NCBI GenBank assembly: GCA_963924565.1
Contig: OZ004612.1
Location: 8,866,001 to 8,930,000, forward strand
Origin: Ascidiella aspersa
Lineage: Eukaryota
Direction: 5' to 3'
DNA: 64,000 bases
In this document: positions 13,282 through 57,687 of the stretch, one piece after another
How the letters are laid out: each line of letters starts with the position of its first letter
How positions within the stretch are numbered: position 1 is the first letter of the stretch
The notes under the pieces: generated by a model
The model's database searches: none
What the model was told of the DNA's origin: nothing
What the model saw: only the letters and a program-made list of their open reading frames with translations
Made by a program: the position numbers and the translations under genes

Positions 13282-13316
13282 TATAAAAGCGCGCGCAGCG
13301 ACAGACTTCCTCATAA
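13282..13316 (+). promoter_or_regulatory. TATA box + initiator, unit A
   Basis: TATAAAAG at 13282 and TCATAA with A at 13313 (31 nt downstream). The same geometry recurs in the paralogs. Confidence 0.7.
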
Positions 13317-13384
13317 CTGCTCTGCCGCCGCTACGCGTATGGTTGTCAGCCTTACTGCTGCTGTTTTACCGAAAGCAAGTCAAC

Positions 13385-13465
13385 ATGGAAGTACATTCAA
13401 CTCTAAAGCATATTGCAAAAGGCAAGAGAGATGTGACTCTCCACAAGCAAGTGAAATACAAGTGA
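13385..13465 (+). CDS. Putative micropeptide/uORF MEVHSTLKHIAKGKRDVTLHKQVKYK* (26 aa)
   Basis: Kozak AACATGG; ends AAA TAC AAG TGA as in the paralogs. A weaker-context upstream ATG exists at 13339 in another frame. Confidence 0.45.
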   Translation: MEVHSTLKHIAKGKRDVTLHKQVKYK

Positions 13466-13571
13466 CCAGATCGCCTTTTTGTGTGGATTACTTTCCATTA
13501 TGAGATGATTCAATGTGACTGGAATTGAGTTACGAGGTCGACATTGACAAGGAGACTGTATTCAACTTCAG

Positions 13572-13824
13572 CGGGGTCAACGTACACCGAAGTACGGACG
13601 ATTTCGAGATACAATCAGGGATTGCCTAAACGCATGAGGTTTATCTCGAAACAGGCTCAAGCCAGGATCGGGCGCCTTCACCCAAAAAGGCCGGGATTCG
13701 AGCGAGCCTGCCACCGCCAGCAAGTTGTCAACGAAGCAGTCTACAGTTGAACTTGACCAGTTCTGCAACAGCAAAGTCTCCGGGATTCAAGCACTTGATG
13801 AGAGACATCACAGCTTTGCAGAAC
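13572..13824 (+). ncRNA. Conserved structured core, copy A
   Basis: 6 differences in 253 nt versus copy E by manual alignment; four hairpins. Confidence 0.6.
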
Positions 13825-16800
13825 ACACAAGTCAACGTTACAGGAATAAAGAGGATACCATCTTCTACAATCACCGCCTTGAATGAGAAAAGGGGGATTC
13901 AAAACAGTGCCAATGTGCATTGGACAATGGCCATTCAAAGAATGTGCCAACTTCGCAGAAACCAAGTTTCTGAGGTTTTGCCACGTTTCAACAACAATGT
14001 TGGTGGAATGAGCGTTGTTACGCATTTCTATATTGTATAAAAATATGTTATTCGTGTACTTAAGTGTATTTCGTGAACGACCTCGCTGTACATGTTGCCC
14101 ACACATGATTTTGTTTCGTTTTTGCCTTTTTACATTTCACAATATTTTTGCAATTAAAGAAAAATTGACCAAAAACACAAGTTTTCGTTTATCGAGTTTG
14201 AGCTGTTAAGAGTAGTACTTCCAAATAGGCAGGTTCAGTTCATACAAAACAGGTTTTTATAATATATTTCTGTCTTTTATAGGCGATAGAAAGTAAAAAT
14301 ATAACAGGTAACAACTTTATCAAAAGTATTTCACTTAATTGGTTTAGAAAAGAGTTGCCTGGTAACGGATGTTATGAAATGTTCAATTAGCTAGCAACCA
14401 TATTCCAAATTTTGTGTTTTATTGTCTAGTTAAGAGCACAACTTCAAATTAGGTATCGACCTGTAATTTGCCACTTAATAAGCTCCATCATTCAAATTAC
14501 AGGCTTTAAAATAATTGATTGACAACTGGCATTGACGTAGGCTGGGGTTATTAGAGCGTGACCGTATTCCGGCGTTTTGTTTAGGGTTAAACATCCTTGT
14601 TTGAATCCAGTGCTTGAGTTGTACAGGTGCCTAGAAATAAAGCTGAATGGCTTGAAATTTAGCTTATCGTACACCATAATGTACAGTTGTACACCAACTT
14701 ATAATAGGGTATATTAGACATGACGTTTAATTACTGCGAACTGTTAAAATGTAGATTTTGCGCAAGGTACGTTCGGCACCATTTTAACAGGCGAATCAAT
14801 TAAGAGTGCACAAAAGTCGTTGATAGTTCTCGGTAAACGAGATATTTAACACTATGCCGAAACTGATTTTACCTCTGGATTGAGCAATATTCGATTCCTT
14901 GTTAGTTATCGGTTCTTTTCCTCCATATAGGAAAGTTAAAAAATATGAAAAAAGAAAAAAGGCAAAAATAAGTAAACAAATTGTGCTTTAGATTGAAAGG
15001 AACAAGAAAAGAGAGTTAAGACACACTTTTGCTTTTCTATTAATTATTAGTTGAACTATTAATTAATTAAGATTTATATTTATTGATAAAGCATATTATT
15101 CTTAGGATTTACCCCACGTTTGTATAATTCATACTGCCGTATTCGTCTTTGTCCATATGATAGTAATTTTGTTTTCATTTTTCGAGTTTTGGCCACTATA
15201 TTTGTAAAACGAACCGAAATTTTATTAATTTAAGACCCTTCCTATAATTTCCTTTTATTAGAGCCTTGAATTTTCCCATGTAATGTGTTTCAACCTTGTT
15301 CACTTGATAAAAGCTCTTTGCGTGAAAGAACTGAAGCACCTAAAGGTGGCCGAAATAGTAAGTGCGAACAGAGCAATAGACGTAGCTTTGAAATTTTGCC
15401 AGTAATTCGAGAGCGCTTTTAGGCGGCCGCGGCGGCAGCGATCGCGTTTTAAGTCGACGAACGTGACCCAGAGAAAGGATAGAAATCTCGCGTCTGGGCC
15501 CGCCGGAAAATTGCGTTTGCGGCGGCGCTGAAGGCAGCAGCAAAATCAGCGCCCGGAAGCTTAAGACGGAAGAGGTTGCCTGCAGAAACAACACCCGAGG
15601 CGCGTCGCGCTGCCAGCCGGCAATTGTGGCTCAAAAAATAAACGCGTCGGTGCAAATTGGCCAGCAAAATGCACCGGACTCGGCAGTCAAAATGCAACCC
15701 ACAGTACGGACCGCATTCGGTACGGTTAGCGCTTTTGTAGAATGCCGTTCTCATCAGACCGAATTGATCCGAAAGTAGCTGGCCGTTTATCGTAATTAAC
15801 GCTCGTGTTTATGCCTGACCAGGACGCTTCTCACCACGCTACAATTGGATTAGAAACGGTGTATTGACCGCGCGCGTAACTGTGTCAACTGTGTATGCTA
15901 ATTTCGATGGGCGATTTCCTTCCACGCGGCTTGATACTCCAGACAGCGTTCCCACATGGAAATTTGCACCACGACGCAGCTGCCGAGTGTTACGCAAGCA
16001 ACCCAGCAAACCGCTTTGTTTATGTGTTAATTTGACTTGCAGTTTTTTTATGTGCTCTGCTTTTCAGTTGATATTTCAATTGTTGCCTATTCTAAACTGA
16101 GTGTTTCATCACAGAACCATCTGTTTGTTAACTGATGCTATCGTAAACGACTCATTAGGGCGTGTTGTTGTTGTTCGACTTGTTTATCACCTTATGGCTG
16201 TCGGAGTGGGCTGCAGCAGTGCGGCAATATGCTAATGAGACACATATGTGCATAGATCGAGCCTAATGTATGCAAATAATCGCGCCACGGAGCATTTTAG
16301 TTGGTGATCGAGCCTTTTAAGTTCTTAACTTTGATGGAGAAAAATGTCAAACATGTTAAAGTCTGCTTTTCGAAACTTGTTTGGTGATACGTGTCTTGGC
16401 AACGTCTTTGCAATCAACCATATTAAGCTGTAGAGAAACTGAAGATTTGTGGCCCAAAAACAAATAAAATGACTCTAGCCTAGTTGGGCTTCCTATAAAG
16501 GTATAGGTACTGTTGAAGGTTTTTGTATAGGCTACAATGAATTGTGGCTCAAAGTCACGTTGACTTTCAAGATCTTGGCCAAACGGATTCGTGCCGTCTT
16601 AGGACTTTCGTGAGAAATTTCAACACACGCTTATAAGTATCAAGAACAAACCAAACATCTCATCGTTACTTAACACCACTCCGTTAATTTAAAAACGCTG
16701 GCTCGTCAACTTAAGTAGTGGTCTTACGCACGAAGCAGTTAAAATCACTTGACTTTCGAAATACAAGTAACATTTTTCCGTGACTGGCTCAAAACTGCTG

Positions 16801-18099
16801 CCCAAGTGTCTTTGGTATATTAGTTAATCGCATTAAACGACGTTAGGAGTTTGCAATGATAGTGAATTACAATTTCTACCTTTACAAACTTTTCCAAATT
16901 ATTTATTCTTTTTTCTATCTTAGCACTAGTGGTAATAAGAATTCGCTTGAGCAACTTTGCTTATTTTTACACTTTGAAAAAATGCAGTTTATTATTTTTA
17001 ACTTTAAAAAATTCAACGTACAGCCTATATGGAAACCTTGTGTTTTGAAAAAAACATAAAAATAAATCTGTTTTGTGCTCCAACTAAGCATTCACCCCAA
17101 AAACAGCTCAGTTGACGGTCGCGGTTATTTGGCGGCCAAGCGGATGGGACTGGTGTGATTCACGCGCGCCAACGTTGCAATTCCCACGGCTGTAGGGTGT
17201 AATTTCGCCCATCGTGTTGTGTCTGCGGCAGCATGGGCGGGATTTTCGTTTGATGAACGAGCGTCCGCCGACCTTCACCCCAAAAGTGGAAAAGTTCGCG
17301 CCGAGGCCGGCGGCCCTGTGAACTCTAGGACCCGTGAATCAATCAACAGGCAGATCGCGCCGCCTCTTTGAAACCCGCCGTTTTTTGTGAGTAGCAGATC
17401 CCCTTTTTGTCGAAAGTCGCCGTGTAAATTTGACAGAGTGCGAAAAAATAGAGTAGATAAAGAAGGGAGCAAGGCCTTTGAAAATTGGCCAGGTGAAACG
17501 CGACCCACTGTAGACTTTTTATTGACATGACCTAACATTTCCAAGTTACCACTGGCGACGTGAACTATAAACCACTTTAAAGGCCTTTCTGACATTTCCA
17601 ATTGATTTTGCGGGTAGCCGCCACAATTTGTAGAAAATGGCCGTGTAATTTTACAAGGTGCGGAATAAAAGGTGTGGATAAACACATGAAAAAGTTCTTT
17701 TTAAATCCAAACTGTTACTGACTGTAAAGCCCAGTTGACATTGCCAAACCTTGGCGGAGGCCATGTCATACGCTAAATGCGCGACGCACCCTGAAAATAC
17801 TAAATAAACGGACCGGCATCGCTGTGAACTCTCGGAGCCCTTGTCTGTGAATTGGTCAACGCCGGTTCACGCCGCCTTGAACAAAGTAAATGAGTCGTTT
17901 CTCACGTCTCAACTTGGATTTCAAACATATTTTACCACTGTTGAGTCTAACGAGTTAGCCTGGTTTTATATGCCATACAGTTTCATACCGACAACAATCT
18001 TTAGCGAGCCGTAGATGCCCAACAGCCCGGAAAGCGATATTATCTGCCGAGCATTATTGCCGGCGTATAGGGATTTCAGGAGTTTGGCGTATAATTTTA

Positions 18100-19750
18100 A
18101 AAACAAAATATACATTTGACGTTAATCGTTGACAGCCCTAAGTTAAGCAATGCTATGCATGTTGAAATGTGTTTACCACTGTAACGCAGCCTAAAAACTC
18201 TCTGTTCGTAAGTCGGGTAAAGGTCAGACTCCGCTTGTCGCTTTGAATGTTTTTTCGTCGTGTATTTGTAGTATCGGTACTCGACCGGTGTCAATACAAA
18301 ACAATTGTTTACCTTGAAATGAAAATTTCATAAAAATCTTTTATAACAGTTAAAATTTCAACTTAGCCATGTAACGCCAAGGCAGATTTGGATGTGCTTG
18401 TTAAAATGTAATGACCACTGTAACGCAGCCTAAAAACGCCCAGTTCCTAACTCGGTTAAAGGTCAGACTCCACTTGTCGCCTTATGATGTTTTTTCGCCA
18501 TGTATTTCGCCGCACGAACACAAAAGAACGCCTTATTGATTTTGCCGAACCCTCTTTCCCTTAACGTTGTCTTACGTTCTGGTCACGCGCTCTACGACCA
18601 GCGTGAACCATGTCGAACACGCCACTTGGAAATTTAAAGAATTAACCTGTGCGTCAGTGGCAGAATACACGCTAGTCAGTTACATATAGGGATCGGTAAG
18701 GCGTACGTGTATCGTCATTATGAGAACGGCAAGAGCATACTTTTCAAATTATGTCATGGCGTTCCTGTGTCGTTTTGCATCGCAACGTTTAAAGCGAAAT
18801 TACGTTTTCTGTCGTTGACGTTTTTAACGCATTGTACAATGTTAGGTTTTCACACTCTTAATTATATGCCGATAATATTAGATCAGAGCTGATACACGAT
18901 GCCAGATTGTAGTATCGGTACTTGACCGGTAACAATCCAAAAAGAAAACAACAAAGTTATTTGAGTATATTGGCCACTTATTATGATCCAAAGCAACGTT
19001 TTCTACCTTTATATGAAAATTTCACAAAAAGTCTTTTATTAACAGTTAAAATTTCAACTTAGCTGTGTAACGCCAAGGCAGATTTGGATGTGCTTGTTGA
19101 AAAGTGATGACCAAAGTAACGCAGCCTAAAAACGCCCTGCCCATAAGTCGGTTAAAGGTCAGACTGCACTTGTCGCTTTGAATGTTTTTTCGCCATGTAT
19201 TTCACCGCAAAAGAACGCCTTATTGACTTTGCCGAACCCTCTTTCCCTTAACGTTGTCTTACGTTCTGGTCACGCGCTCTACGACCAGCGTGGTCCATGT
19301 CGAACACGCCACTTGGAAATTTAAAGAAGTAACCTGTGCGTCAGTGGTGGAATACACGCTAGTCAGTTATATATACGGATCGCTAAGACGTACGTGTATC
19401 GTCATTATGAGAACGGCATGCGCATACTTTTTAAATTATGTCATGGCGTTCCTGTGTCGTTTTGCATCGCAACGTTTAAAGCGAAATTACGTTTTCTGGC
19501 GTTGACGTTTTGAGCGCGTTGTACGATGTTGGGTTTCTACACTCTTAACTATATGTCTTATAATATTGATTTGGAGCTAATACCCGATGCCAAATTGCAG
19601 TATCGGCACTCATCCGGTGCCAATCGAAATAATACCACTTAGGATCCTATACTCCACGTTTTCTACCATTAAACGGAAATTGATCAAAAATTCTTAAATT
19701 TATTGTTTAAATTATAAGTTAGCTGTGTAACGCCAATGCAAATTTTGGCT
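18100..19750. repeat. Tandem duplication, ~640-690-bp unit (2 full + 2 partial)
   Basis: Unit anchor gYagtatcgg at 18268, 18909 and 19597; long near-identical stretches, e.g. 18547-18850 versus 19234-19540. Confidence 0.9.
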
Positions 19751-22245: not shown

Positions 22246-22464
22246 AAAAAGATGCAAATTTAAATGGGAGGCAATCGCTTTTAAATAGATTCTAACAGCT
22301 ATAATTCGTTGCTTTATTGGACGCGGCAAGCAGATGTTTCCACTCCCGTGCCACAAATGTTTTTTAAAGTGGTCTTCTATAAGCGGGGACAAACAGGCAC
22401 CCTGGTACCCTTTGGATTGGCCTAGTGAACTGCAAAGCCCTTCAGAGAACTTGTTGATTTTTCA

Positions 22465-22615
22465 GAACCTCTTTCCCTTAACGTCGTCTCACGTTCTAGT
22501 CACGCGCTTTTTGAGCAAGCGTGGGCCATGTCGAACACGCCGCCAAACTATTTCAAAATCTTTAACCTGTGCGTCAGTCGAGGAATGTGCACCGGTCAGT
22601 TACTTATACGGACCG
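22465..22615 (+). repeat. Diverged copy of the core of the 18.1-19.7 kb tandem unit
   Basis: Aligns with 18547-18695 and 19234-19381 (ctctttcccttaacgt...ccatgtcgaacacgcc...taacctgtgcgtcagt). Confidence 0.85.
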
Positions 22616-23049: not shown

Positions 23050-23947
23050 CTGATGGTCATAACATTGACTCTGAATGCAAACGGTGTAATCGATTATGTG
23101 ACATTTGTTAATCGACACGAATAAATATGTATTTTTCTGAAATATCACAAGTCACATTTACAAAGCAGATTTAGTTGTTTAACGAATTACAGTTCTACTG
23201 TTTTTGTGTTTTGGAATTTTATCTATATCTATATCTGTAAAGTTACCATATTTTTTTCTGCAGAAGACTACATGCCAATCGAAACGTCGGCGGCATTAAT
23301 ACACGTTTAATCAGAAAAAAAAAACATTTTTAATTGACAAAACAATCTTATTTTCTCCCAAATATACTTCTAGATGAGTGTCTTTTTTTACGTTGCAATT
23401 CCAACCGCATCAATGAAGTGTTATCTTCGTTGTGTTCGTTGCAAATGTCGTCGTTTGTTGTTTTGTGATGTGATGTCTCTCATCAAGTGCTCGAATCCTA
23501 GAGACTATTCCTGAAAAATTCGACACAACGGGCAGCTTTTGTGATCACTTTCTGGCGGTGGCAGGCTCGTTCGAATCCCGGCCTTGTTTGGATAAAAGCG
23601 ACCGATCCTGACTTGAGCCTGTTTCGAGATAAACCTCATGCGTTTAAGCAATCCCTGAATTTATCTGAAAATCGTTTGTATATCCACATACGTTGACCCC
23701 GCTAGAAATGTGGTGTCGCTATAAGGATTTGTCCCTTCTTCTATTGAAAGGTCACAAGGTTCTTCTGCATCTGAATATGCGACCAAGTTGTCCTTTTGAT
23801 CACAAGTCACTTTTCCACATTTAAATGTGGTATTTATCAAGTTGTGTCCGGGCCAACCCTAAATGTAGCTCTAGCGAAAACGATTTCAGCCTATCGCTTC
23901 GCAATTAGCGTTTAGACAAAGAAAACAGTCGTGTGGTCTCTTATATA
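23050..23947 (-). other. Paralogous transcription unit B (most diverged; no intact KYK ORF)
   Basis: TATATAAG at 23947 on -, AAAAGTGA remnant at ~23810, TTTCTAG then diverged core at 23701-23470, AU-rich tail. Confidence 0.6.
23470..23701 (-). ncRNA. Conserved structured core, copy B (diverged)
   Basis: A ~45-nt stretch is identical to E; hairpins are retained with wobble and compensatory changes. Confidence 0.55.
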
Positions 23948-29815: not shown

Positions 29816-30876
29816 GTTTTTCGTTTTTATTTGGTATAGGCACTCCCCATGAAGAGTGAACCTCGATATGTGATTGAAAGTTTGCCTTAACGTTTGTTGA
29901 ACCGTGCGTTTTTTCATCTATTATTTAAATCGTTCACCTGTTCCTTCAGAATAAACCGGTTCACCCCCTTTGTAAGTTTACCTTGTTTACCAGACGCAGC
30001 AGTCTTCCGGTCTCTAATCGATTGGTCCTTCTTTTCCAGCTATAGCACACGTTTGGCTGGCGTGGTCGACCGCCCATGTTCGGCGTATTGGCAATTCGTT
30101 GAACGGTGGCCCTATTATTCCCCTTGCTTCGCCGTATTCAACACGCCACAACAACGACAACATGTCCTCCAATTTAGCTGGTGGACAGTACACAAGGTGA
30201 TTTCCGTGTTCGCTTAATTGCGTTTTGCTGGTCACCCGATGACCACTGGAATTTTTTCTTCGGCGAAGTTGTACTCCTGTGTATGTAAAGCGGGAAGTCG
30301 AGAGCTTTGTGTACTAGTAATTTATAAACAGACACGCAACGCGACAGAATAAATAAGAAAGACATTACTCGGAATTTGGCGGTGAAAGGCCGTTTTTTAA
30401 TCTTGTTGTTAAAAGATAACAACCAATAAATATTTTCTGAAAAAAGTATAGTCTTTTACGTGTACTGTGCCGTTTTTGTATTTCGACATCTCGTGATATT
30501 GGACTGAAATATCACGCAGTCGCACATTTTTTTCATCGGATACCATACTTTTAAGGGGCGATAAACAAGTCGACCATTTGGTTTGAGGTATCGGCTACTG
30601 TTCGACAATACGGAAGTCAGTACTAATTTTCAAACCCTAAACTTTACTGCAATTGGGCAAAAAAAACTTTTGGTAGTTAACATATTGTGCCTAGTCATTT
30701 CAATTCAAGTTTTGCAGCCTGCGCAGCACTTCCAGATACAGTTCACTCGGTCAACAACCCACCTTAAGCGTTAGCCGCCTCTTCAGTGGTTTGGCCGTCG
30801 ATAGGTTAGGCCCAAGTTCACTGATACTGTTTAGCCGCGCCCGGCAGTTTTGATTGGGTCGCCTCGGCAGGAGCAG

Positions 30877-31013
30877 AAAATTGCCACAAGGTCGTTCACG
30901 ATTTTGCCGCGCCTCGCCTCTAATTGAGCGCCTTGATGAGCGCTTGCTTGGTGAGAAGGCAGGACGACAATGACCGCGCTGGGCTTTCATTTGAGGGCTT
31001 CTGACGCACGCTG
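30877..31013 (+). repeat. Duplicated ~137-bp element, copy 2, ~1.59 kb upstream of the unit C TATA
   Basis: Near-identical to 11700-11836. Confidence 0.9.
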
Positions 31014-32468
31014 CCTAATGATTTGACCGGTTTGGGGGTGCCTAAATTACAGTCTTTGGTCGGCACTGGCTGTAATTTAGCCGGTAACATGGCCACTGTT
31101 GAAGAAAAGTTCGGTGTGTATCGGTTAATAGTAAAATTCGATTTGATGGTGCAAAATAATACATGCCACCGGATTCCCATTTAGCAAAAGTGTAGGTTTT
31201 ATGTTTTACATCACGACTTTACGCTTTTGTCGCCAATTCAACGATTAAACATCTCAAATGAAGGTAAACGAATGTATTTAAAGTCCATAATTTCTCATTT
31301 AACCGGTATCAGTTCATTTAACCAGTTCAATTTTGCATTCCTACCGGTATCAGTATCAGTTTAGTGTAAAACGAAGGTAATTTCTATTTTAAATATACTG
31401 TAAACTTGACATGCCTCTGAGTCGGTTTCATATTGTTTTGAATTTAAAGTGTTTTATTTTATTTAATTAATTTGAAATGAAGTGTTTCTAATTAAAGTAA
31501 CCCAACGATTTAGCGTATGATGTCGCCTGATGGGACGCGCCAGCGCTCGCTTAGATCGCATCTCCAAATTTGGTGGACTCCACTGCTGCTGTCTGTTTAC
31601 AAACCGTGGCCGTTCGCCAGAGTTCGCGCCGTGGTGGTTCGCAAACCCGAAAGCTGTGTTTGCTTTCCAATGCCGCGCGACTGAATATGGTGGCACGAGA
31701 GCAGGCTGCTTGATATTAGCTTGGCTGGTGCGCGGACGGCGCGAACCTTATATGGCACATCGTTTTAATGAGCAATGTCTTTACTCATGTCGTTGGCGCC
31801 GACGCGGGCCGATGGGCTCTGCGCTTTCCAAGAAATTGTAGGACCGCAGAGAGCGTGTTATAGGCCCTGCAATAACATTAATCGATGGCTGTCCCGGGAA
31901 AGGTAGAGGCATGCCGAGAAATCCCGCAGCATTTACCCGCATTCGTCCCTGCGACAATAAAGGGTGTCGATTTTTCTAGAATGCCGACGATTTTGCTTGG
32001 ATTTTACGACCACTTCAAACGAGCTCCGCTGCTTTTCTTTTACCTCGCGTTCGTGTCATTTTACTCGTTAAACAGCAATGCTAGCATCTCTATTTAAGAC
32101 TGCCTCGTGCTAACAATAAAGCGAATAATAAAGGTGAAAACGTGCTTGTGAAATCGATATATCGTGTGCAGGAGACCAAAGGCATAGCGACAAGGTAAAT
32201 ATTTTTGCAGCTTCAGCGTAGGTCTGCAAACAATTGCGCTCGGCAGAGTTGCGCAACCTTTGTGATAGTAGTTTTGCAAAACACGCATAACCAAGTACGG
32301 CCCCAGGTGTTTGCCTTCCAAAACCTTATCGACCCGCAAAAGTCTTGCACCACGTAGGCTTAAGATTTTGCACGGGCAAGCCAGCCGCCAGAATTTTTTC
32401 GCCTTCTTGCCCGACACTTTCACCACGTTGCGAGAGCGTGGAGCACGAGAAAAAGGCAAATCGGCGCG

Positions 32469-32503
32469 TATATAAACGAACGCCCAGCCGTTAATGGTCA
32501 CTT
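32469..32503 (+). promoter_or_regulatory. TATA box + initiator, unit C
   Basis: TATATAAA at 32469; Inr TCACTT with A at 32500. Confidence 0.75.
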
Positions 32504-32557
32504 TACGTTTTGTCTCTGCTGGTTTCACGCGCGCAAACGGATTTATTACAACCGACG

Positions 32558-32629
32558 ATGGAAGCGCGAATGAAATCGCACTGCAGCAAGATGCTGACGG
32601 GAAACGTCAAGCGAGAAAAGTACAAGTGA
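32558..32629 (+). CDS. Putative micropeptide/uORF MEARMKSHCSKMLTGNVKREKYK* (23 aa)
   Basis: First ATG after the predicted TSS, Kozak ACGATGG, ends AAG TAC AAG TGA. Confidence 0.5.
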   Translation: MEARMKSHCSKMLTGNVKREKYK

Positions 32630-32747
32630 TCAAAATGAAGCAATCATCCTTGAATGGATTATTCTCTACTACTGATGAAGCAATGTCCAGTGAGCATTGA
32701 ACCAATATGCTTGGTTCGTTGGTCGGAAGACTGTCTACAACTTTCAG

Positions 32748-33000
32748 CGGGGTCAACGTATACCCAAATACGGACGATTTCGAGATACAACCAGGGATTG
32801 CTTAAACGCATGAGGTTTATATCGAAACAGGCTCAAGCCAGGATCGGGCGCCTTCACCCAAAAAGGCCGGAATTCTAGCGAGCCTGCCACCGCCAGCAAG
32901 TTGTCAACGAAGCAGTCTACAGTTGAACTTGACCAGTTCTGCAACAGCAAAGTCTCGGGGATTCAAGCACTTGATGAGAGACACCACAGCTTTGCAAAAC
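32748..33000 (+). ncRNA. Conserved structured core, copy C
   Basis: 5 differences in 253 nt versus copy E by manual alignment. Confidence 0.6.
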
Positions 33001-34134
33001 ATCCAAGTCAACTTCTAAGAACAAACGACGAAAAGTACAACTGCCCACTCAGCCAACGTGAGCTGACTAATGGGCGCAAGTTGTAAAGAAAACGTTCTAC
33101 AACATGGGTTAGCGTTTCCGCTGCCTTTGTATTTCCAGCGATGCCTGCTCTTACCTACTCGATATCTCTAAGGAGAAATTGAGTGTTTATGTATATATAC
33201 TACATTGTTATTACTTATTAGTTTGGCGCAACACTGTGTCTTATGCTTTTTGCCAATTTATCGTGTCGTTATTTTGTAACGCGTTGATCATGTGTTTCTT
33301 TGACATGTTATTTTTCGAAACAAGGTTACAAAATGAATTCAATCTTTTCTGATTTATGAAACAGATTTAGGAAAAAAGTTAGAAATGTAAAACAAGACAG
33401 GAAAGCAGTTATTCGGTATTATGACAAGAAAAATGCAAAACAAAAAAATCTTTGGTAACCATATAGGTTCAGTAACAAATCGGTTACTTCATTGAACAAA
33501 ATATATAGTCTAAAATACAATTTAGTGTTTGAAATATATCGAGGTCAATTAAACAGACAGATATTTTTTTTTTGTTCTCAGCCTCTAGAATTCCGCGGTC
33601 AAAATTGTGCTTTTTGAGTGCGGGGGTGTTGTGGCAAAAACTAACGGGCTCTACTATAAAAGGACACAAAAACGTAAGGGCACTTATACCTGTTGTAGCG
33701 CCCGTGTGGGCCGAGCCAATAAAGGGAAAGATTTGATGTGTCATACATATTTCCAAGGCATGTCAGTATCACATCAGGGATATGTGACAGGGCCTAAATC
33801 AATTCACAGACCAAAGGGTTTGGTGCGCGCCTTTTGACAGGTTGGGCCTGCCTGTAATTTTGGCCGATACCGTTTGAGGTTTGGCGCTTCCGAATGGCTT
33901 TCATCTCGATAGTATATCTGTGATCGACAAATTGTCTCTTTCGTGGACATAATGGCACAGGCCAATTGCAACACATTGGCGACTGACAGTTGACGGTTTG
34001 ATGTGTTGATTTAACCGCCTTCTAAAACTTTCTAAAATCTTGCTTGAAAGGCTGGTCACAATCAGTTTATGTTTTTGGGAATGCGGAAGGCAATATAATC
34101 GAATTTTATGTATACCATTTTAATTCGTTTAAAA

Positions 34135-34466
34135 CACTGGTTCCCAACAAGGGGCTCTAAGCTGTCGGTGAAAAACAGCTCCAAAGCTGTCGGTGAAAAG
34201 GTTACATGGGGTTCGCGAGTGCTCTGAAAATCACCAATGTTTTTAATGTAAGGCATGTAAATTTTGAGAACGTTTTTATACATATTTTGACCACAATATT
34301 GCATTTTAAGGTCTCTAGTCCTTACAAACATATAGACGTAGTTTTGCAAGATTGTTGGTTAGGTTCGGTGCTAAACGATTTAGGGGTTGTCACATTATAG
34401 ATAAGCTTTTGAAAGTGAGTGGTCCCCCCGAGGATCTGCGTCTACCAAAAAAATTGGGAGCTACTG
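34135..34466. mobile_element. Degenerate hAT (Charlie-like) MITE
   Basis: Ends CACTGGTTCCCAA / TTGGGAGCTACTG; 8-bp TSD gtttaaaa/gtttaaac. Confidence 0.75.
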
Positions 34467-37347
34467 GTTTAAACAGTCACCTTTGCGAGCCACGTGCTTA
34501 ACGAGCGTTCATCAGACAAACGGCCGGTTTTGGAATGTAAGAAAATATCGACTAGCCTACGTGACCGCAATGTTGTTTCTGCCTGAAACGATCGACCGTT
34601 AAGCTTGTCCTTTGCGCTGTGTAAACATGCCGACCTGCTGTTCGAGGCTCTGCACGACGGCATTTTGCTTTCAGGATGAGCGTTTCCGCGAAAATACCGC
34701 TGTAATGCCTGGAAGGTTGCTTTCGGTCACGTTGGCCAAGCTGTTTGCCCAATAGGCTTGCAAAATGCTCGGCAATTCCAGTTATTTATCTTCGCCTTGG
34801 GTTTTAAATAGGGTTTATAAAGGATTTGGATTTTCTTCAAGTTTCCTTTATCTGCAAAACAGTTGCATTTTGAAAGCAATCTGTCACTTCTTCGTATTGT
34901 GAAGGTTTAAATGTGTACGTTTCATTTCTGAATAACTTCTTGGAACAATGAAATTTAGCTACATTTTGTAATTTTCCCTCTAATTGAGATGGTTTTAACA
35001 TACAGTATAAACGGTTTCATTCGTTTGCGAAGAGTCAAATTTCACACGCAAACTTCATAATTTTACTCTCGTCGCGTAGATAAATGTTGTTCTCTTCTTT
35101 CGAAAATGCCCCTGTTCGGCAGTCCCAAAAACGCTACATTTTCAAAGCACCTACATCATCCCTCGCGTACTGCTTCCAACGGCAATCGAGGCCCTCAAAT
35201 CGATCCAAATAAGGCCAAATAAAAGTTAGCTTGACGCGATTCAGGTTGAAGGGCCTTCGCGGATTTCATTTGCAAAGGAAATCCGCGACAAATCACCAAA
35301 GTCCGACATTCCCGCGTGTATCGTTTCGACGCAGACTCAGCGCGTCCAGCAGCGGGCCGTTTCCGACAACCCTCCAAAGCCGCGAGACTGCTGATGTCGA
35401 GCTGTAACAGAGGAATGCCGCCCGTCAGCTGCGGCGACGGTGTCAGCGCTGGTTCGCTTGTTTTCGGGAAACGCGACCTCAGCAAACTTAAAGCAACTGT
35501 TCCTGATTGGTGCCGACCGAATATTAACGTCGACCGAATTTTGCATGTGTTGGAGACTGGCGTAGATGGAGGATTTTTGTTTGGGTTAGGGGCATGAATT
35601 TTTTTCAGACTTGACGTCACAAAGTTAACGTGACGCCGTATAGAAGTTACCTTAAGAACACACCACAGTCCGTTTATTTTATTAATGTGAACACGTGACC
35701 TAGATCCGCCTTTAGTGGGAATGCCGACAAGGCGAAAATATTTGAAACACGGCCCAAATATTCGAACTGAATCGCCATCTCTTACACCATTGTGTTGGGT
35801 GTTGTTTATTTTGTTCGTAATAGAAATGCTTTGCGTTTTTTTCTATGTTTATTAAAGGTATTAATTTGCAGGGGGACTAACATGGTGAACTTGAAAGCGG
35901 TTTGCATTTATATTCCGAGGTTCTGTAAATAAAATCACGTTTTATCTGTCGATCCTCTTTGGTTTCGATAACTATTCAGGGGCAACTGACTCGAAAATCA
36001 TTTTTTTGTTAAAATTGGTGATTTTTGACGACAAATAAACAGTATTTATTTGTCAATATCTGGCCAAACACGTTTGCGCCACTGGTGTAAGCAAACGCCC
36101 CAAATTTTGCTATTTGTTATCCAATAAACGATTTCCTGTTTATTAAAATCAACATTAGGGCCGTTCGCAGTATTTTTAAATTGTCACAACGCTATTGGTT
36201 TGTTTTGCAATTAAGGTTTTAAGAGGGAAAAACAGCAAAGCCGTTTGCCCTTTACTTTTCCTTGATTTCTTACAATCTTGATTAACATGCAGGTTCTTGA
36301 CATATGTGGGAAACGAGTCAGCCGCCGGCCTGGTGTTGGTGATTGCGTTGATATTTGCTTTTTGAGTTGAGAACAATTCCAGCGCCTGTATTTCTCGCGC
36401 CTATATTCCAGCTGGCGTATTGTCCAACTGTCAAGCCTCTCGCTAATTACTCGAGCAAACAAAACTAAGGTGGTATTATTTGATCACGTTGAGCATATTG
36501 GTTTTCTCCTCATACGACGATTGTTAGGCTTAATCTTATAGCTTTTTGTCACTTGTTAGGTTATTTGTTGTTATTTTATAGTTTCACGAGTATCGTGGTC
36601 TTAAACTAAATAAACCAATGCAAACTAAACTTAATCTCAAGTAGTGAATTTTGTTTGATAGCAGTTTTTTAGTCTGTCCAATAACGACATGAAACGATCG
36701 GTATAGTACGATGGCCATTTCACAATAGACGGCTAGGTAGAGGATACATGTGCACTGTGCAGTTACATTGTAACAGTATAGTTTCAGCTTTTGGTGGCAG
36801 TGGATATTAAAGGTATCAATTCATTCTACTTAGACCGGTAAAATACCAGTTACGTGGGCTGTACAGATCATCCCATCCCAGTTCTCGGTATAGTTACAGG
36901 CGAAGAGGCGCCTTTTTTCTAAAATTATTCAAGGTGCGTCGCCAGTTCACACCCTTATCGACAGAGGAAAGCAGCTCGAGAGTAAGTAACGCCCGCGGCG
37001 CCGGCGACGACGCCCTCGTCGGCCGCATCGGTCTGAGTCAGGCGCTGACGAAAATCAAGCATCGCAAAGCGACGCGCCAAATATGTAGCCGTCGCTTTTT
37101 CCCTCCCCTTTGATTCTCGCTTGTCGCGCCAAACGGCATCTATCGAAATTCCTTCGCACTTAATCAAACATTTCAAACGCGCTGTTGCCCCGTATAGGTA
37201 AACAAAGGGGCGGCGCCGTAAAAGGCCTTGTTCAAAATGAAACCTCTGTGTAGCCGCCGAACGCGCGCGCGATGTAACCGAAGACCCTCGAAGGGTTTGA
37301 TTTCTCGCTTCAGAGCGACATGGCCAGGTTGTGAGGCCACATTTAAG

Positions 37348-37826
37348 CGGCCGGCCCTCTTTTCCCACCCTTTTTCTTGTAAGGCTGGGATGAAAATCGT
37401 GAAAAAGCTACATTTACGGCTTCTGCGGGCAAATCGACAAATTCTGGACTGTTAGTGGGTGAAACTAAGTCAGTAAAGGGGCTTTTAGATAAAGCGACCA
37501 AAGCCGTCTTTTTGGACCACTTTTTTATCTTTTAAAAGGCTACAGTGGAAAACGTGAATAAGATATATATTAACTACTGCTGCGGTCAAATAAACAAAGG
37601 CTAAAATTTTGTGGAAAAAATAGTCGTTGAAGGGTGCGTTTCGATAGAGCGGCCAAAGCCGTCTTTTTGGGCCGCTTTTCTTTATCTTTTTAAAGGCTGA
37701 TATGAAAAACGTGAATAAGCTATATTTACGCCTGCTGAGGTCGTCATAAGCTGGGCTTTAAGTTGGTTAAACTAAGCAGTTGAAAGGGGCGTATCGATGG
37801 CGCATCCGAAGCCGTATTTTTTGGCC
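37348..37826. repeat. Degenerate tandem repeat, ~150-bp unit, ~3.2 copies
   Basis: gcggccaaagccgtctttttgg...aaggct...aaaacgtgaataag recurs at ~37348, 37494, 37648 and 37802. Confidence 0.8.
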
Positions 37827-41648: not shown

Positions 41649-44017
41649 GAGGCACCCACGTTGGTTGATCTGATTGCGAGCGATTTTGCGAATTTAAACG
41701 TGACACTTAAAAACAAAGAACGTGAGTGGTTTACCAGGGTTCCAAGGTTGCATAGCGTGCTGTGCGGAACACGTGTTATCAACAGCCGTTAACAGGTGGT
41801 CAAAGAAGGGTGCTGTCATACTTTAAAAAACTATAGCACAGATTTCATGAAAATTTGACATAGATGCCACCGTTTTACAACCCTATTACGTGGCCATGTT
41901 GGCCTGTCTTATATTGTCGACGATTTCCTCTTAATTGCAGTTTTATCGTTTTTAAGTGTTATCCAAACGTTACAAAAACAAATTATTTTGTCAGTTTTAT
42001 GTGACCTAAATACTCTCGCAACTGTGAGAACTGCGTTTAACACAGCCAAACCACGTCGAGGTATATGGCGATTTTTCAATCCAAGATTTCTTATTTTGTA
42101 GGCAAGGTGATTTACCCGACAATTGCCAGCTTCAACAGGTTACACCCAGACGACGTAGGCGAATATGTTGCTGTTCAAACGCAGAACGGGCTTGTGAAGA
42201 AGTGCGACAGGCATTTTCTTTGCGTCCCAGGCGAGCGATTTCAAAGCTGAACTGAACTTGGGGTCACTCGACCTCACGGCGGTACATCAGACGCGGTTTT
42301 CACGAGAACACTCGGGCACGCCGCGCTTTGATATAACTCGTATCTTTATACTGCTGTCGCCAAACTCGTTTTTATTAATAAAATGTGTTTTCTTCATTAA
42401 CATATAGAACTGTGGGCTGCTAAACTAAGACGCCAACGACGAAAAAGAAAGAAAAGGTTGACAAATAAAGGCCAAGAGAAAGAAACGATTGAAAATTAAA
42501 GGCCTTGGTTTTAAATAGTCCATCCGTTGCCCATTCCGGTTTAGCTTTTGATCAATACCGTTATACAAAAGCCGGATGCACTCATTTAGACTTGTGATGC
42601 ATTGCCGGATTACTGAAAGGTCACCAGAATTGATGGTGGTTAAATTTAGCGCGAAACAATGGCGCTTTTAATTGCCTGACAAATGATGTCTGGCGTTATA
42701 TAACTGTTTTTTTTTTATTAATTAAAAACAACCGCCACTGACTAACAAGGTGGCAATTTTAGGAAAGGCAAAGAAAGCAGTCGCCATACAGTATCATAAT
42801 GCCATTTATTTTTACTTTCCAATAGATTTATTTATACTTTAATCCGTGGAGCTTCGCACCTTACACCTGCACAAGCTTAAAACACATCCAGCGCCAGTCG
42901 TTGACATTTCAAACGGAAGGCGTCACGGTCTGCCGATTACAGTCGAATTCGTCAAACGACAAGACAGCTTCCAATTTGCGCGGGACAAAGTTCAATCGCA
43001 AAGCTGCACCGGGCAAAATTGCACGTCTTAAAGGTGCGTAAGTCATAATAAAGCTTCCGCCTGTCCGCTCGTACAGACGCCTTAAGTTCAGGCCGATGTT
43101 TGACCGTCTTGTAGCCTAATAACCACCTTCAGCATGTTTCCAGGCACCGACGTTAGTAAGTTGTAACCATCAACCCGGAGCCGTAAAGGCAATTACAGTG
43201 GCGCCAGCTAATAGCCCAACCAGCGCGCCTAATTGCAGCATCCGTCAGCGATCGTGGCCAGTTTTGCACCTCGGTCAAGCTGCTGCTTTGCCTGACAAAT
43301 GGCGAATCGAGCGCCGGGAAAACGTGTTCGCCGTGGCTCGTTTTTACGTAAGGGGAAGTGCTTCTTGCGTGGCACGCGTTCGCCGTTTACGCCCACTCTA
43401 CAAACAAACAAGAACGATTGTCCACCGATGACCATACTAAGACGCGAGCTTTGTTTGGGCGAGTTGGTTTATTGACGATGTCTGACGTAAAGCAAAGGGC
43501 GATCGTGAAAGTTGACAAGGAAGCCTGTCAACGAAGGACGAGCGAAGTGGCAAAAACAAGAAAGGCGCTGAAACAAAGAAGCGCAAATGTGCAATGCGAA
43601 GGAAAAATAAACTTGAGGTGGAATTTAATGCATTTACTTGCAAAATAAAACGCGCAACTTAGCGGAGGCCAACAAAGAAATAAAACACAAAATGTGACAT
43701 CCTTTGGGAGACACAGAGCTTGGTCGACGATGTCAGTTCACTTGAAGCTATATAGTTGAGGTCGTCTGATATGCGGAATACTCGGCGATTCATCACAGTG
43801 TAGAACTGGCTTTTTGAAAGAAAACAAAACTTTAAGTAAAAAAATTGAAATAAATGCATAATATTTAAGCCACTACATTTTATCATTGTTAATTCCGCGT
43901 AACCTAATTACAAAATATTAGTTAAATACATTTTTATCATGTTATACACCTTTAGACCAAACCAAATAAAGCGTTAATTACCTTAAAACTCTCTTTTTTG
44001 AGCATATAGAGACATCG

Positions 44018-44399
44018 TTGACCTGTATGTTTTGCAAAGCTGTGGTGTCTCTCATCCAGTGCTTGAATCCTCGAGACTTTGAAGAACTTTTCCTTTACAA
44101 CTTGCATCCAGTCGTCAGCTCACGTTGGCTGAGTGGGCAGTTGTACATTTTCGTCGTTTATTCTTTGAAGTTGACTTGTATGTTTTGCAAAGCTGTGGTG
44201 TCTCTCATCAAGTGCGTGAATCCCAGAGACTTTGCTGTTGCAGAACTGGTGAAGTTCAACTGTAGACTGCGTCTTGACAACTTGCTGGCGGTGGCAGGCT
44301 TGCTCGAGGCTTGAGCCTGTTTCGAGATAAACCTCATGCGTTTAAGCAATCCCTGATTGTATCTCGAAATCGTCCGTACTTTGATATACGCCGACCCCG
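44018..44399 (-). ncRNA. Conserved structured core, copy D
   Basis: Core homology; the tip of hairpin 2 is deleted and part of hairpin 4 is duplicated at ~44018-44080. Confidence 0.55.
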
Positions 44400-44500
44400 C
44401 TGAAAGTCGTCCACAATCATTCTCTTAAATGTAAATTTTAGAAACGCGTTAAAGCCGCCGCTTTCTTCATGTGGTATATTGGAAAATGATTCACATAATG

Positions 44501-44581
44501 TCACTTATACTTTGCTTGTAAAGTTTTACCCCGTGCGGGTCCTGAATGTAGGTCCGCACACATTGTTTGACAGGGTACCAT
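44501..44581 (-). CDS. Putative micropeptide/uORF MVPCQTMCADLHSGPARGKTLQAKYK* (26 aa)
   Basis: First ATG after the predicted TSS, Kozak AAGATGG, ends AAG TAT AAG TGA. Confidence 0.5.
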   Translation of the reverse strand: MVPCQTMCADLHSGPARGKTLQAKYK

Positions 44582-45287
44582 CTTAACACACGGGGCCACG
44601 TGCGTCGAATCGACAAAGCGGATGTGAACGCGGCAGCCCAAAGTCGTGCTTTTATATAGGGCGAGCCTATAGCAACCGCAGACGGGCAGCTCAAAACAAA
44701 GCAACATATCGTCGCCCTTTCGACAGCGAGGCCCTACCACCGGTGGGATTTCCACAACTTTTCCGGACGAAGAGTTGAGGTTTGACAGCCGGTTTTCGGT
44801 TTGGAAAACGTCGCGATGAAAGTGGTTGAAGTAAGATATCGAATTCTTCGGTGTTTTGCACTTAGACGTTCACTGTTATTGGTACGTTACAATTTTGAAA
44901 ATCTCTACCATGTTTTGATGTTTTATCCTATTTATTCCACGTGTCAGACCTGGGTAAACCTTTCAGAATTATTGTTGCCAATAGCAACCAAGTAATTGTT
45001 TTTCGGGTAAACAAAGCTTTTTTGAGCTACAGTGAAAATCTGGTATGAGGTTAACTTTAAGTCACCAGCTCAATTATTGTAACTAATCGCACAAAATATA
45101 CCTTAGTTCATAATATTTTAGTTGATTAAAATTGAATTGGTCACCAGCACTAGTTCATCCTATATATTGTCTGGTGTCGAGGTAGACGTGCTAAAAAGTA
45201 AATAACCATTTTTACTGCAAGATTATATAACGACGCATAGCAGGTTGTTTGCTTACGCTTATGTAACAATCCAAGTTTTATGTACAG

Positions 45288-52120: not shown

Positions 52121-52455
52121 TAGGGATTCTTAAACTGGGGTTCATGGACCCCTTGGGGGTTCGTGAAATTGTTTTAGGGGTCCGTGTAAGCCTAGGTAAA
52201 AGATTAGTGTTTATTTGAGAAGTAATCAAATTAAAAAAAAATAGTTTAATTAAAAATAAAACATTATTGCACCGAATGTATAAAGACTTTATTTCACTTT
52301 CACATTTTTGTACCGAAACATCAGATTTCTAAAGCTCATTTGTATTGTGAAGTAAATTTATGACGTCATCTCTAAAAATTTTTTCCCCTAATGTGGTCCA
52401 TGCGAAGCTAAGAATTTTTTTAGGGTCTGCGGTAAAAAAAGTTTAAGAACCCCTG
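52121..52455. mobile_element. hAT (Charlie-like) MITE
   Basis: TIR tAGGGaTTCTTAAACT / AGTTTAAGAACCCCTG; TSD gattagac/gaatagac. Confidence 0.85.
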
Positions 52456-55400: not shown

Positions 55401-56617
55401 GTGTTCTGGTGCCTTTGACGCTTTGGGAATTTACGCACTATCGCGCGAAAAATCACTTAGGCTGCTTGTTTACTTTCCAAGTTAGAAAATTCGCATAAAT
55501 TCCTGCACAATAACACTTTCGACGAAAAGCGTGCCCCTTATTCGAAAAACAAAACAAAGCAAAGCAAATGTGTAATCAAGATAACTTGGAAGTGAGTTTA
55601 TTTCAAGAAACAACCTCTTTTACAATTAATCGTACATTATATTTATCATCGGAAACATATTTTATAACTTAAAAGCTTGTTAGCGTATATACGGAGCACG
55701 TACCCACTTAACGAGATTTAAACCTAAATAACGCTAAATATAAATATAAATGGCCTATCTTTTTAAACCAGGCTGTTTTCGACGATTATTTTTGCGAACG
55801 GTCTAAGTCGCCAACAGTGTGTCAAATACGTTCATTGTGAGCCGTGCAGCCCATACGCAGTAGTAGGCCCTAATGTGCTTGCTGTGCATTAAACTGGGGT
55901 TAAGGCGGGTTTACCTAACTAAGAATACGCGGATAATTTCCGCACTCCGCTATTGAAATGTTCTGCCCAAAACTTCAAAGTACTGCGTGTGCACCCAGTT
56001 GAACCAGAACCACGGCACGCTAATTGCGTTAATATTAAAATCATGAACCGGCGTCAACCGACCGATTCCTTACATTTTTACTGGGATAATATTACCGGAA
56101 CCTTTGATGAAACGTTGCCGGAAAATGGCATTTGGCCCAACCTTTTGAATGTATCATAAAGCTTGATAGCTTGCGTGCGTACTTTAATTTACCAGGTAGT
56201 CTATATCCAGGGCATTTCCTAGGTAGGCCTAATCGGCATGTATCGGTCATCCAGTTCCACATTAAAACTTTCCAGTGCATTTTTGATACTGCGAAATGGG
56301 CAACTTTCCCCAAAATTGTCGCCGGAGCAAATATTGTGCGCAGAAGTCACAAGTTTTTGGCCGGCTGTAAATCTGGCGGAAATTTACCGTTGATTTACTG
56401 GAGACTTTCTGCTGTACTGAAGCCTAGCAGCTAGTAAGGCTAGACGGCGTCACGTGCCTGAAAAGCCCCGTCTCGTTCTGTTTTTCTCTTTGCGTTGCGC
56501 ATCGAAGAGCTGGCCATATATAAGCCCGCGCACAGCGCCAGTTCGGTTATACAGCTCTTGTTGCTGCTGCTACGTGTACGTACGCCGAATATGTTTTTGT
56601 ATGTTCAGCGTCCAATT

Positions 56618-56692
56618 ATGGATTTACCGACAATATGTTTTGTTGCCGCGGGATGCAACGAAATTCAAGCTTCCAAGCAAAAGTACAAGTGA
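56618..56692 (+). CDS. Putative micropeptide/uORF MDLPTICFVAAGCNEIQASKQKYK* (24 aa; an in-frame ATG at 56591 gives 33 aa)
   Basis: Kozak ATTATGG; ends AAG TAC AAG TGA. Confidence 0.5.
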   Translation: MDLPTICFVAAGCNEIQASKQKYK

Positions 56693-56795
56693 CGAACTGC
56701 GCTAACGCAATGGATTAATAACTATCCTGAGAAGAAACGTTTTTCATAGAAGATAATCTTCTGAAGTTCATAACGGGACTGTCGACGACTTTCAG

Positions 56796-57048
56796 CGGGG
56801 TCAACGTATACCCAAATACGGACGATTTCGAGATACAATCAGGGATTGCTTAAACGCATGAGGTTTATCTCGAAACAGGCTCAAGCCAGGATCGGGCGCC
56901 TTCACCCAAAAAGGCCGGGATTCGAGCGAGCCTGCCACCGCCAGCAAGTTGTCAACGAAGCAGTCTACAGTTGAACTTGACCAGTTCTGCAACAGCAAAG
57001 TCTCGGGGATTCAAGCACTTGATGAGAGACACCACAGCTTTGCAGAAC
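56796..57048 (+). ncRNA. Conserved structured core, copy E
   Basis: H1 56826-35/56866-75 (10 WC bp); H2 56876-82/56928-34; H3 56945-56979; H4 56984-92/57040-48 (9 WC bp). Confidence 0.6.
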
Positions 57049-57687
57049 GCATGAGTCAATTTCAAAGAACAAACGACGAAAAGTACAACTGCCCAAACTC
57101 AGCCAATGTGAGCTGACGACTGGATGCCAGTTGTAAAGGAAAAGTCTATCATACCAAAGCTACAGCAGATTCATTGCGAATTCTGCCTTGATGAACAAGT
57201 CGCAGCACCTTACCTGCGACCATCAAAGCTTGTTGCCTAGATGTGCTCTTCATTTTATATATTTATTTATTACCATTTTCCAAATGGTTCTTCGTTTGTT
57301 GTATTTTTCGTGCTGTGACAATTGTGCCATGTAATTGAAAGTTTGTGTCGTGTTTTGCTATTTTATTAAAAAAAACATCTAAGCAAAGTTGATTGTGTCC
57401 GCGTGTTTGGTCGACAGTACAACGTAGGCTAGGGCTAGAAAGCTTAGCACAGCAGTGAGCGCTGTTGTGCGTAGGCCTGTGACTTTCCAATTAGTCACCC
57501 CATAACTCGTTTTAGAAAGGGCCTAGTGCTAATTATAAACAACAATAACGGTTTCGAGCGTGTCTATGATATTCAGCTGCAAAGGACACAGCGGGGAATT
57601 TTGAAACAGTTTCAATTAGGGTCAATGCGCAGCATTTATAGAATTAGGTTTTTAAAACGAACGGAATTGTGACAGTATAGTGTACAT

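Follow-up and report, generated by a model that had tools for sequence, protein, structure and literature searches.

A clustered, expressed family of five units pairing a short open reading frame with a predicted structured RNA core in Ascidiella aspersa

Here we describe a family of five related units, u1 to u5, in a 64,000-nucleotide (nt) stretch of the Ascidiella aspersa genome, referred to below as the window (contig 6, 8,866,001-8,930,000, of a 308.6-Mb assembly in 75 contigs). The units span 44 kb of the window in the orientation + - + - +, and all five share one order of elements: a TATA box, an initiator (Inr)-like site, a leader, an aligned TGA, a spacer, a conserved core and an AU-rich tail. 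We are confident that this locus-restricted, expressed gene family is real, and consider it probable that the core is constrained as RNA. Based on the sequence of the five copies, we propose that they form a lineage-restricted family transcribed by RNA polymerase II (Pol II) into dual-function RNAs that carry a micro open reading frame (micro-ORF) and a structured, protein-binding core, a reading to which we give an even chance.

Layout and genomic distribution

The units were recognised by repeat finding, self-BLAST of the window, sequence reading and an alignment (A1); their features are listed in Table 1. The sequence-only reading that our analysis followed up had placed five loci here in alternating orientation, with TATA boxes about 10.7, 8.5, 12.2 and 11.9 kb apart. 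All five were found at those positions, and the TATA-to-TATA distances, counted from the first T of each box, are 10,665, 8,522, 12,189 and 11,859 bp. An Inr-like A lies 31-33 nt downstream of the TATA box (positions in Table 1), and AAGTGA, replaced by TTGTGA in u2, follows 145-181 nt after TATA with its TGA aligned in all units. The spacer measures 102-122 nt from GT to AG and ends in CAG, or in TAG in u2. This is the order of elements given by the earlier reading, which had put the spacer at 105-122 nt and had not separated the u2 motif. It had also described a core of about 250 nt directly after the YAG: the conservation of the core stands, whereas its borders had to be moved, since conservation begins about 20 nt before the CAG, giving a core of about 280 nt, and in u3, u4 and u5 continues for about 90 nt beyond it. 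No ORF spans the core, in keeping with the claim that no copy has a long one.

Almost nothing is common to the units outside the core, the exception being a 137-bp module that u1 and u3 both have about 1.6 kb upstream (see below). Promoters and leaders cannot be aligned between units and spacers keep patchy similarity only; a comparison of the promoters for common motifs gave no 7-mer in at least four units and no 8-mer in at least three. The kappaB-like GGAAATCCC sites in u1 and u4 are anecdotal.

Genome searches with the core as DNA, with a covariance model of the core 5' domain and with two 24-nt invariant blocks (up to 3 mismatches) returned these five loci, an internal duplicate within u4 and nothing more from the entire assembly. 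A dispersed transposon or short interspersed nuclear element fragment, the competing explanation that the earlier reading had singled out, is therefore ruled out by the confinement of the core to five loci on one contig, and chance similarity between the units is excluded. The DNA sequencing runs X1 and X2 cover the region 30500-35000 evenly apart from a 3- to 5.5-fold excess of depth over the core, as five cross-mapping copies would give. In the model set out below, the units are five old paralogues of one lineage-restricted gene.

Conservation and predicted fold of the core

Core identity is 94-97% among u1, u3 and u5, about 95% to u4 outside a 35-nt deletion, and about 80% to u2. The u4 deletion affects only the tip of hairpin 3, and a further 1 nt is deleted from its linker. 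Copy u2 has diverged most; it carries indels of +1, -7 and -2 and keeps three invariant blocks: its changes number 0/46 in columns 52-97 of alignment A2, 0/18 in columns 140-157 and 3/38 in columns 212-249, compared with 24% in columns 7-51, 17% in columns 98-139 and about 55% in the linker (columns 158-211). Columns 258-266, at the 3' end of the core, form a hot spot of variation.

This pattern is difficult to reconcile with a protein-coding exon, and we reject that reading, since the indels shift the frame and the invariant blocks of 46 and 18 nt lack wobble variation; blocks without third-position variation are unlike coding sequence. Six-frame translation gives stops in every frame of every core copy. 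Two recoding schemes were also dismissed. Reading the conserved TGA as selenocysteine, or reading through the TAA, leads into downstream frames that are not conserved. A -1 frameshift at CCCAAAA would join two frames that the u2 and u4 indels do fuse, but a stop interrupts them in u3, the peptides further downstream are dissimilar and wobble is again absent from the invariant blocks, so that we regard the motif as a coincidence. Pfam gave nothing in any open stretch of the core, a protein word search with core frame c found no match, and HMMER comparison of core frame b with 1.84 billion representatives returned one chance match only. Metagenome pattern scans and a viral pattern scan for the core were empty, and nothing relevant to the family was found in the literature.

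When the first 149 nt of each copy were folded alone, the same four-way junction was obtained in all five (z = -2.9, -2.1, -3.4, -3.0 and -2.8). It spans 147 nt and consists of a closing stem, GCGGGG/CC(A)CCGC, with three hairpins, and is also present in the fold of the 251-nt core and in that of the 827-nt predicted u5 transcript (z = -3.5 for the latter). In u4, the 35 deleted nt correspond exactly to the distal part of hairpin 3, the base of which (CAGGCUC/GAGCCUG) stays in place. The stem of hairpin 1 is kept through a change from U-A to C-G in u1 and to U-G in u4 while its loop differs in every lineage, and hairpin 3 has a C-G to U-A change in u2. Over the whole consensus structure, 95.7% of cells are paired, compared with 31-45% when the partners are slid, and double-sided changes affect four pairs, where shuffles give 1.2 +/- 0.9 and reach four in 4 of 500 cases. 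The loops and internal loops of the core are invariant.

A further helix, P0, is predicted between the roughly 20 conserved nt that precede the CAG and the linker that follows the junction; each of the five copies has it in its minimum-energy fold. Both P0 strands of u2 differ from those of the other copies and yet pair (CAC.AUUUC/GAAAGUG and CGACAC/GUGUCG); duplex energies against shuffles give p = 0.013-0.06 per copy. The CAG itself lies in an internal loop between the P0a segment and the junction stem in all five folds. Because P0 uses nucleotides upstream of the CAG, the conserved domain needs unspliced RNA, which agrees with the reads described below.

Downstream of the linker lies hairpin C, the upper part of which is invariant in all copies. 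Kink-turns (k-turns) combine a canonical stem, a 3-nt bulge, tandem sheared G.A/A.G pairs and a non-canonical stem; by inspection, hairpin C is predicted to follow a k-turn-like pattern. The motif GGGAUU recurs in hairpins 2, 3 and C. The recurrence of one predicted fold in every copy, with some covariation, lends some support to the earlier description of an ultraconserved structured core.

The fold matches no known class among those we compared. Rfam 15 gave no match at gathering thresholds in the 64-kb window, and a permissive scan of u5 yielded only chance-level small nucleolar RNA (snoRNA) matches (E 1.9-6.3; 13-20 bits against thresholds of 37-80). The earlier reading had proposed this covariance check and had not recognised the family; the Rfam, Pfam and protein searches all came back without a match. 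A tRNA or tRNA-like element is rejected, as ARAGORN finds no gene in the window and the 147-nt junction lacks a T-loop motif. A hammerhead ribozyme is likewise rejected: UUGAUGAG has C3 replaced, the base after the helix following GAAAC is C and not U, and Rfam again gives no match. Reading the UGAUGAG and GAAAC motifs as boxes C/D fails on core nucleotides and arrangement, and inspection for a telomerase RNA template, an Sm site and Pumilio sites found none consistently present.

Transcription and retention of the spacer

RNA evidence comes from reads aligned to one unit (30500-35000, containing u3). In X4, a stranded RNA-seq run of which about 6% was sampled, 24 reads were obtained; all lie in bins 32463-33217, and the first mate is on the minus strand in every one, which indicates plus-strand RNA given the usual stranded library. 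Contigs of X3 cover 32565-33301 only. Since X3 is confined to this interval and belongs to the same study as the evenly covering DNA runs X1 and X2, it behaves as RNA.

The X3 core contig has a k-mer depth of 6,751 and u5-type letters, a 182-nt contig joining 112 nt of u5 spacer to the core has a depth of 4,793, and u3-specific contigs range from 100 to 320. In X3, expression is very high for u5 and about 20-40 times lower for u3; in X4 it is low for the two units alike. These differences between X3 and X4 indicate that expression is strongly regulated.

The spacer is mostly retained in u3 and u5 RNA. At least eight reads cross the acceptor unspliced, six X4 reads carry u5 spacer contiguous with core, an X3 contig crosses the u3 donor site, and depth in the u3 spacer bin (32614-32764) is 5.7 compared with 6.4 in the core bin. 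No splice joints were reported for the u3 region among the 24 X4 reads and the X3 contigs, a sample in which rare isoforms may be missed. A cis-spliced intron is consequently rejected as the main state of the spacer in these 24 raw reads: its GT...AG ends are present, but joints are absent and the spacer is retained in u3 and u5.

Transcripts also run through T-rich tracts. The abundant u5 contig and the u5 reads include the TTTTT at 56739-56743, and u3 RNA continues for about 800 nt beyond the TTTT at 32509-32512. Pol III type-3 transcription stops at the first run of at least four T, and a U6/7SK-like gene of this type is rejected on the continuation of the RNA past T4-T5 runs. We infer that the polymerase is Pol II, which fits both the TATA/Inr geometry and the T5 read-through.

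After position 33000, three X4 reads go on with a 30-nt sequence that is unlike all five assembled copies at several positions, so that the sequenced animal may carry a divergent allele or a sixth copy.

The micro-ORF

Each leader ends at the aligned TGA, and in four of the five units this stop closes an ATG-initiated ORF of at least 20 codons. Such an ORF arises in 5-12% of dinucleotide shuffles per leader, so that its presence in four of five units has a p of about 5e-4 in these leader shuffles; the leaders are too diverged to align, and the copies are therefore near-independent for this test. Around the start codon, position -3 is A in all five units. Position +4 is G for the start chosen in u1, u3 and u4; in u5 it is G for the second in-frame ATG (56618, context ATTATGG), from which the ORF has 24 codons. 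The KYK codons differ at only two nucleotides, both synonymous (AAA/AAG and TAC/TAT), and the peptide body is not conserved. Selection seems to keep the frame open together with the C-terminal and stop context rather than a folded peptide, judging from these comparisons. Translation of the micro-ORF is for us an evenly balanced proposition. A check of seven ATG-ORFs from the units found none of them in the protein collection.

The motif that ends the micro-ORF, GAAAAGTACAA, occurs a second time, in direct orientation, shortly 3' of the core in u3 (32612-32628 and 33027-33045), u4 and u5 (56672-56690 and about 57075-57092). The repeat may represent a second binding site or the relic of a target-site duplication, or may be fortuitous (an 11-mer is expected about 0.08 times in 800 nt).

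Table 1 Features of the five units (positions in the window; a slash in the u3 spacer marks the intron-like ends)
Unit	Feature	Position	Strand	Details
u1	TATA box, TATAAAAG	13282-13289	+	First T at 13282; Inr-like A at 13313
u1	Micro-ORF	13385-13465	+	26 codons + TGA, ends KYK*; second ATG of predicted transcript; context AACATGG
u1	Conserved core	13553-13852	+	Repeat finding, self-BLAST
u1	Core parts		+	Structured core 13553-13836: P0 5' strand, four-way junction (13571-13717), linker, hairpin C
u2	TATA box, TATATAAG on minus strand	23940-23947	-	First T at 23947
u2	Remnant micro-ORF, MWKSDL*	23800-23820	-	6 codons, ending at aligned TGA
u2	Conserved core	23469-23708; whole core 23469-23725	-	Repeat finding, self-BLAST
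u3	TATA box	32469-32476	+	First T at 32469; Inr-like TCACTTT, A at 32500
u3	Micro-ORF, MEARMKSHCSKMLTGNVKREKYK*	32558-32629	+	23 codons + TGA; first ATG; context ACGATGG
u3	Spacer	32626-32747	+	Intron-like ends CAA/GTGA ... TTTCAG/; kept in RNA
u3	Conserved core	32729-33102	+	Includes 3' extension; repeat finding, self-BLAST
u3	Four-way junction	32747-32893	+	
u4	TATA box	44650-44658	-	First T at 44658; Inr-like TCACATC, A at 44625
u4	Micro-ORF	44501-44581	-	26 codons + TGA, ends KYK*; first ATG; context AAGATGG
u4	Conserved core	44079-44418	-	Repeat finding, self-BLAST
u4	Second hairpin C copy	44017-44081	-	92% identical to 44170-44234
u5	TATA box	56517-56524	+	First T at 56517; Inr-like A, predicted transcription start site near 56549
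u5	Micro-ORF	56591-56692	+	33 codons + TGA; first ATG of predicted transcript
u5	Conserved core	56777-57145	+	Repeat finding, self-BLAST
u5	5' structural domain	56776-56966	+	Four-way junction 56795-56941
u5	P0b	56776-82 with 56960-66	 	GGACUGU with GCAGUCU
u5	P0a	56784-91 with 56946-53	 	GACGACUU with AAGUUGUC
u5	Hairpin C	57000-57030	+	Stem GUCUC/GAGAC, bulge GGG, G.A + A.G, U.U, stem UCAA/UUGA
u5	3' extension and tail	57031-57375	+	Extension to about 57145, common to u3 and u4; AU-rich tail, ATTAAA at 57366

In u1 the 3' tail runs to about 14045 and cannot be aligned with those of u3-u5.

Proposed model and alternative explanations

In the model that we favour, each unit's own TATA/Inr promoter would drive a mostly unspliced Pol II sense RNA of about 0.75-0.85 kb, and the large expression differences across samples and paralogues would fit regulated promoters of the TATA type. 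A micro-ORF of 23-33 codons in the leader, ending KYK-UGA, would be translated by ribosomes. In the core, P0 would span the acceptor-like CAG and close the junction, with the linker and the k-turn-like hairpin following, and the whole would act as a protein-binding scaffold. The transcript would then be a dual-function RNA composed of a small ORF and a ribonucleoprotein (RNP) module. The assignment of protein binding to the invariant loops and the k-turn-like hairpin is tentative, and we lean somewhat against it. Pol II, translation, protein binding and a biological role are all presumed in this model. As regards the earlier reading, its proposal of Pol II transcription units holds for sense-strand RNA over roughly the predicted span in u3 and u5, with the polymerase itself presumed; its proposal of a micropeptide and/or a structured RNA has some support in an ORF open in four of five units and in one predicted core fold throughout, translation being likewise presumed.

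Several observations weigh against this model. The z-scores of the junction are moderate, and that of the whole 251-nt core is only -1.9. In u2 and u3, pairing is lost at several stem positions with no compensating change, and the covariation comes from five paralogues, three of them nearly identical, with no orthologues reached. Gene conversion could explain part of the core identity. The micro-ORF has been lost from u2, where six codons are left. By depth, up to about 40% of u5 core RNA could be without the spacer, through splicing, trans-splicing or 5' coverage decay, and the RNA evidence consists of one unit's alignment and 24 raw reads, so that rare isoforms are possible. A search of the genome for antisense matches to the two invariant blocks, as 24-nt patterns with up to 3 mismatches, found none.

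Three alternatives concern the fate of the spacer. The units could be small-protein genes with one cis-spliced intron, in which exon 1 (M...KY) joins 19 further codons to give 41-44 amino acids ending ...TDDFEIQSGIA* at an invariant TAA, and the rest of the core is a conserved 3' untranslated region. The GT and AG ends are aligned in all five units at an intron-like 102-122 nt, phase is kept in all of them including u2, the TAA is invariant and the micro-ORF seems to be under selection. However, no joint was seen among reads of which at least eight cross the acceptor, and an abundant contig joins u5 spacer and core; the donor is weak, with A at -1 and C or T at +5; the 19 added codons have mostly non-synonymous changes (synonymous in 2/8 changes among u1, u3, u4 and u5 and in 2/11 in u2); conservation is stronger after the TAA than before it; and the linker pairs with a conserved stretch of 20 nt before the CAG. 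We regard this gene model as unlikely. The second alternative is a structure-gated splice switch: P0 would hide the branch region and the 3' splice site, leaving the RNA unspliced (...KYK*), and unfolding or a bound factor would allow splicing, giving a longer peptide and loss of the fold. In every fold a splice-site-like CAG occupies the internal loop that separates P0a from the junction stem, which is compatible with this, as is the conservation of donor and acceptor motifs although no splicing was seen, with the frame into the core kept in all copies. The switch is a deduction from these features, spliced reads were not found and the added codons show no protein-level constraint, and we judge it improbable. 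It is similarly improbable, in our estimate, that the family constitutes a new class of chordate (tunicate) regulatory RNA in which the helix closing a junction/k-turn domain hides a functional 3' splice site and switches between an unspliced ...KYK RNA and a spliced, longer-peptide mRNA without the fold. Still less credible to us is a spliced-leader trans-spliced or 5'-processed RNA, whose variable 230-nt leader would be an outron cut at the CAG and whose core would be the mature product. Trans-splicing is common in tunicates, to which the host belongs, and the u5 spacer has an estimated depth of about 4,100 (derived from the contig at 4,793), less than the 6,751 of the core; against this, no loose-end cluster was reported at the acceptor, the contig joining spacer and core is very abundant in its own right, P0 depends on the 20 nt before the CAG, and the upkeep of the micro-ORF would be left unexplained.

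The other two alternatives concern the core itself. Transcribed, functionless duplicates kept alike through gene conversion would be expected to show some of what we see: the linker is near-identical in u1, u3, u4 and u5 and about 55% changed in u2, identity falls abruptly at the core borders, and u1 groups with u5 in the core and yet is without the 3' extension of u3, u4 and u5. We judge this explanation improbable, because the unconverted u2 is conserved in blocks (0/46 and 0/18) beside segments that are 17-55% changed, indels spare the helices, the u2 P0 has compensatory changes, the ORF is retained, and expression is very high and strand-specific. A precursor of small RNAs (microRNA, siRNA, piRNA or snoRNA-like) cut from the core would draw on the core hairpins, the UGAUGA element and an X3 depth that is greater over the core than over the flanks. 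The excess depth is explained by u5 reads mapping onto u3, as the core contigs are u5-type, no stem reaches the length of a microRNA precursor, and the snoRNA matches in Rfam are at chance level (E 1.9-6.3) and below gathering scores; we hold this to be the remotest of the explanations considered. The dual-function reading, with a core constrained as RNA and a spacer mostly retained, is in our view the best supported.

Neighbourhood of the units and other genomic observations

The 137-bp module has only two copies in the genome, at 11700-11836 and 30877-31013 (93% identical), one upstream of u1 and the other upstream of u3. It holds a GCGC-CTTGATGA-GCGC hairpin that echoes the TTGATGAG of the core, and no RNA reads cover the u3 copy. 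The module may be an enhancer or a remnant of a larger duplication. Between u1 and u2, three tandem units of about 690 bp (83-95% identical) occupy 18100-19745, with a related piece at 22450-22615. Local repeats unrelated to the units, with 71-86% identity, comprise two tandem ones (37354-37826 and 59597-59882) and a dispersed one (57706-57945 versus 63046-63289). A scan of the ten longest ORFs of the window (126-198 amino acids) gave no Pfam match, and by this coarse test no coding gene besides the five units was detected in positions 1-64000.

Elsewhere in the assembly, the mitochondrial contig 75 is 36,093 bp long with 42% G+C. Tandem repeats make up about 21 kb of it, in units of roughly 3.5 and 1.6 kb, and within them tRNA-like Ile and Arg predictions occur repeatedly; every tRNA predicted on the contig has the same strand. 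Its COX1 has in-frame TGA and AGR codons at Gly positions, so that IFG, GGGDP and VGGLTG read IFR, GRGDP and VRGLTG under the standard code; AGR encodes Gly in the ascidian mitochondrial code. This contig is an unusually large tunicate-type genome or an assembly concatenation. A 71-position COX1 fragment on nuclear contig 7 (30046519-30046731) is likely a mitochondrial insert.

Significance and comparison with known RNA systems

A gene without a long ORF or a known RNA family is expected to be missed by standard annotation. Yet at least one sample has RNA of this family among its more abundant transcripts, and the surroundings have diverged around a 280-nt domain that stays near-constant. Being compact and amenable to genetics, the five-copy system bears on the coexistence of a small ORF with a structured RNA, on the masking of splice sites by RNA structure and on the origin of lineage-specific RNP RNAs in an invertebrate chordate. 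If orthologues exist in other tunicates, the covariance model used in our genome search could define a new RNA family.

By analogy, the closest match in layout is ENOD40 of plants, which is likewise an RNA of about 0.7-0.8 kb without a long ORF, with a tiny 5' ORF, a separate structured region of high conservation and strongly regulated expression. However, there is no homology between the two, which belong to different kingdoms; the ENOD40 peptide is conserved, whereas only the frame and KYK are conserved here, and the ascidian units form five clustered paralogues. In evolutionary behaviour, the nearest analogues would be paralogous long non-coding RNAs such as roX1 and roX2, paralogous Pol II RNAs that evolve fast overall and keep invariant stem-loop and box elements presumably read by proteins. 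Unlike these RNAs, which act in dosage compensation and have scattered 8-nt boxes, the family described here has a contiguous domain of about 280 nt and no homology to them. Cloverleaf elements such as mascRNA and viral tRNA-like structures also combine a closing stem with three hairpins, whereas the junction of the ascidian core has 147 nt, long arms, no T-loop or D-loop signatures and no CCA-type end. Hairpin C, by inspection, resembles the k-turn RNAs bound by the L7Ae/SNU13 family (the U4 5' stem-loop and box C/D RNAs) in its stem, bulge, G.A/A.G and U.U pairs, but differs from them in having no box D with terminal stem, no guide region and no Rfam snoRNA or small nuclear RNA match.

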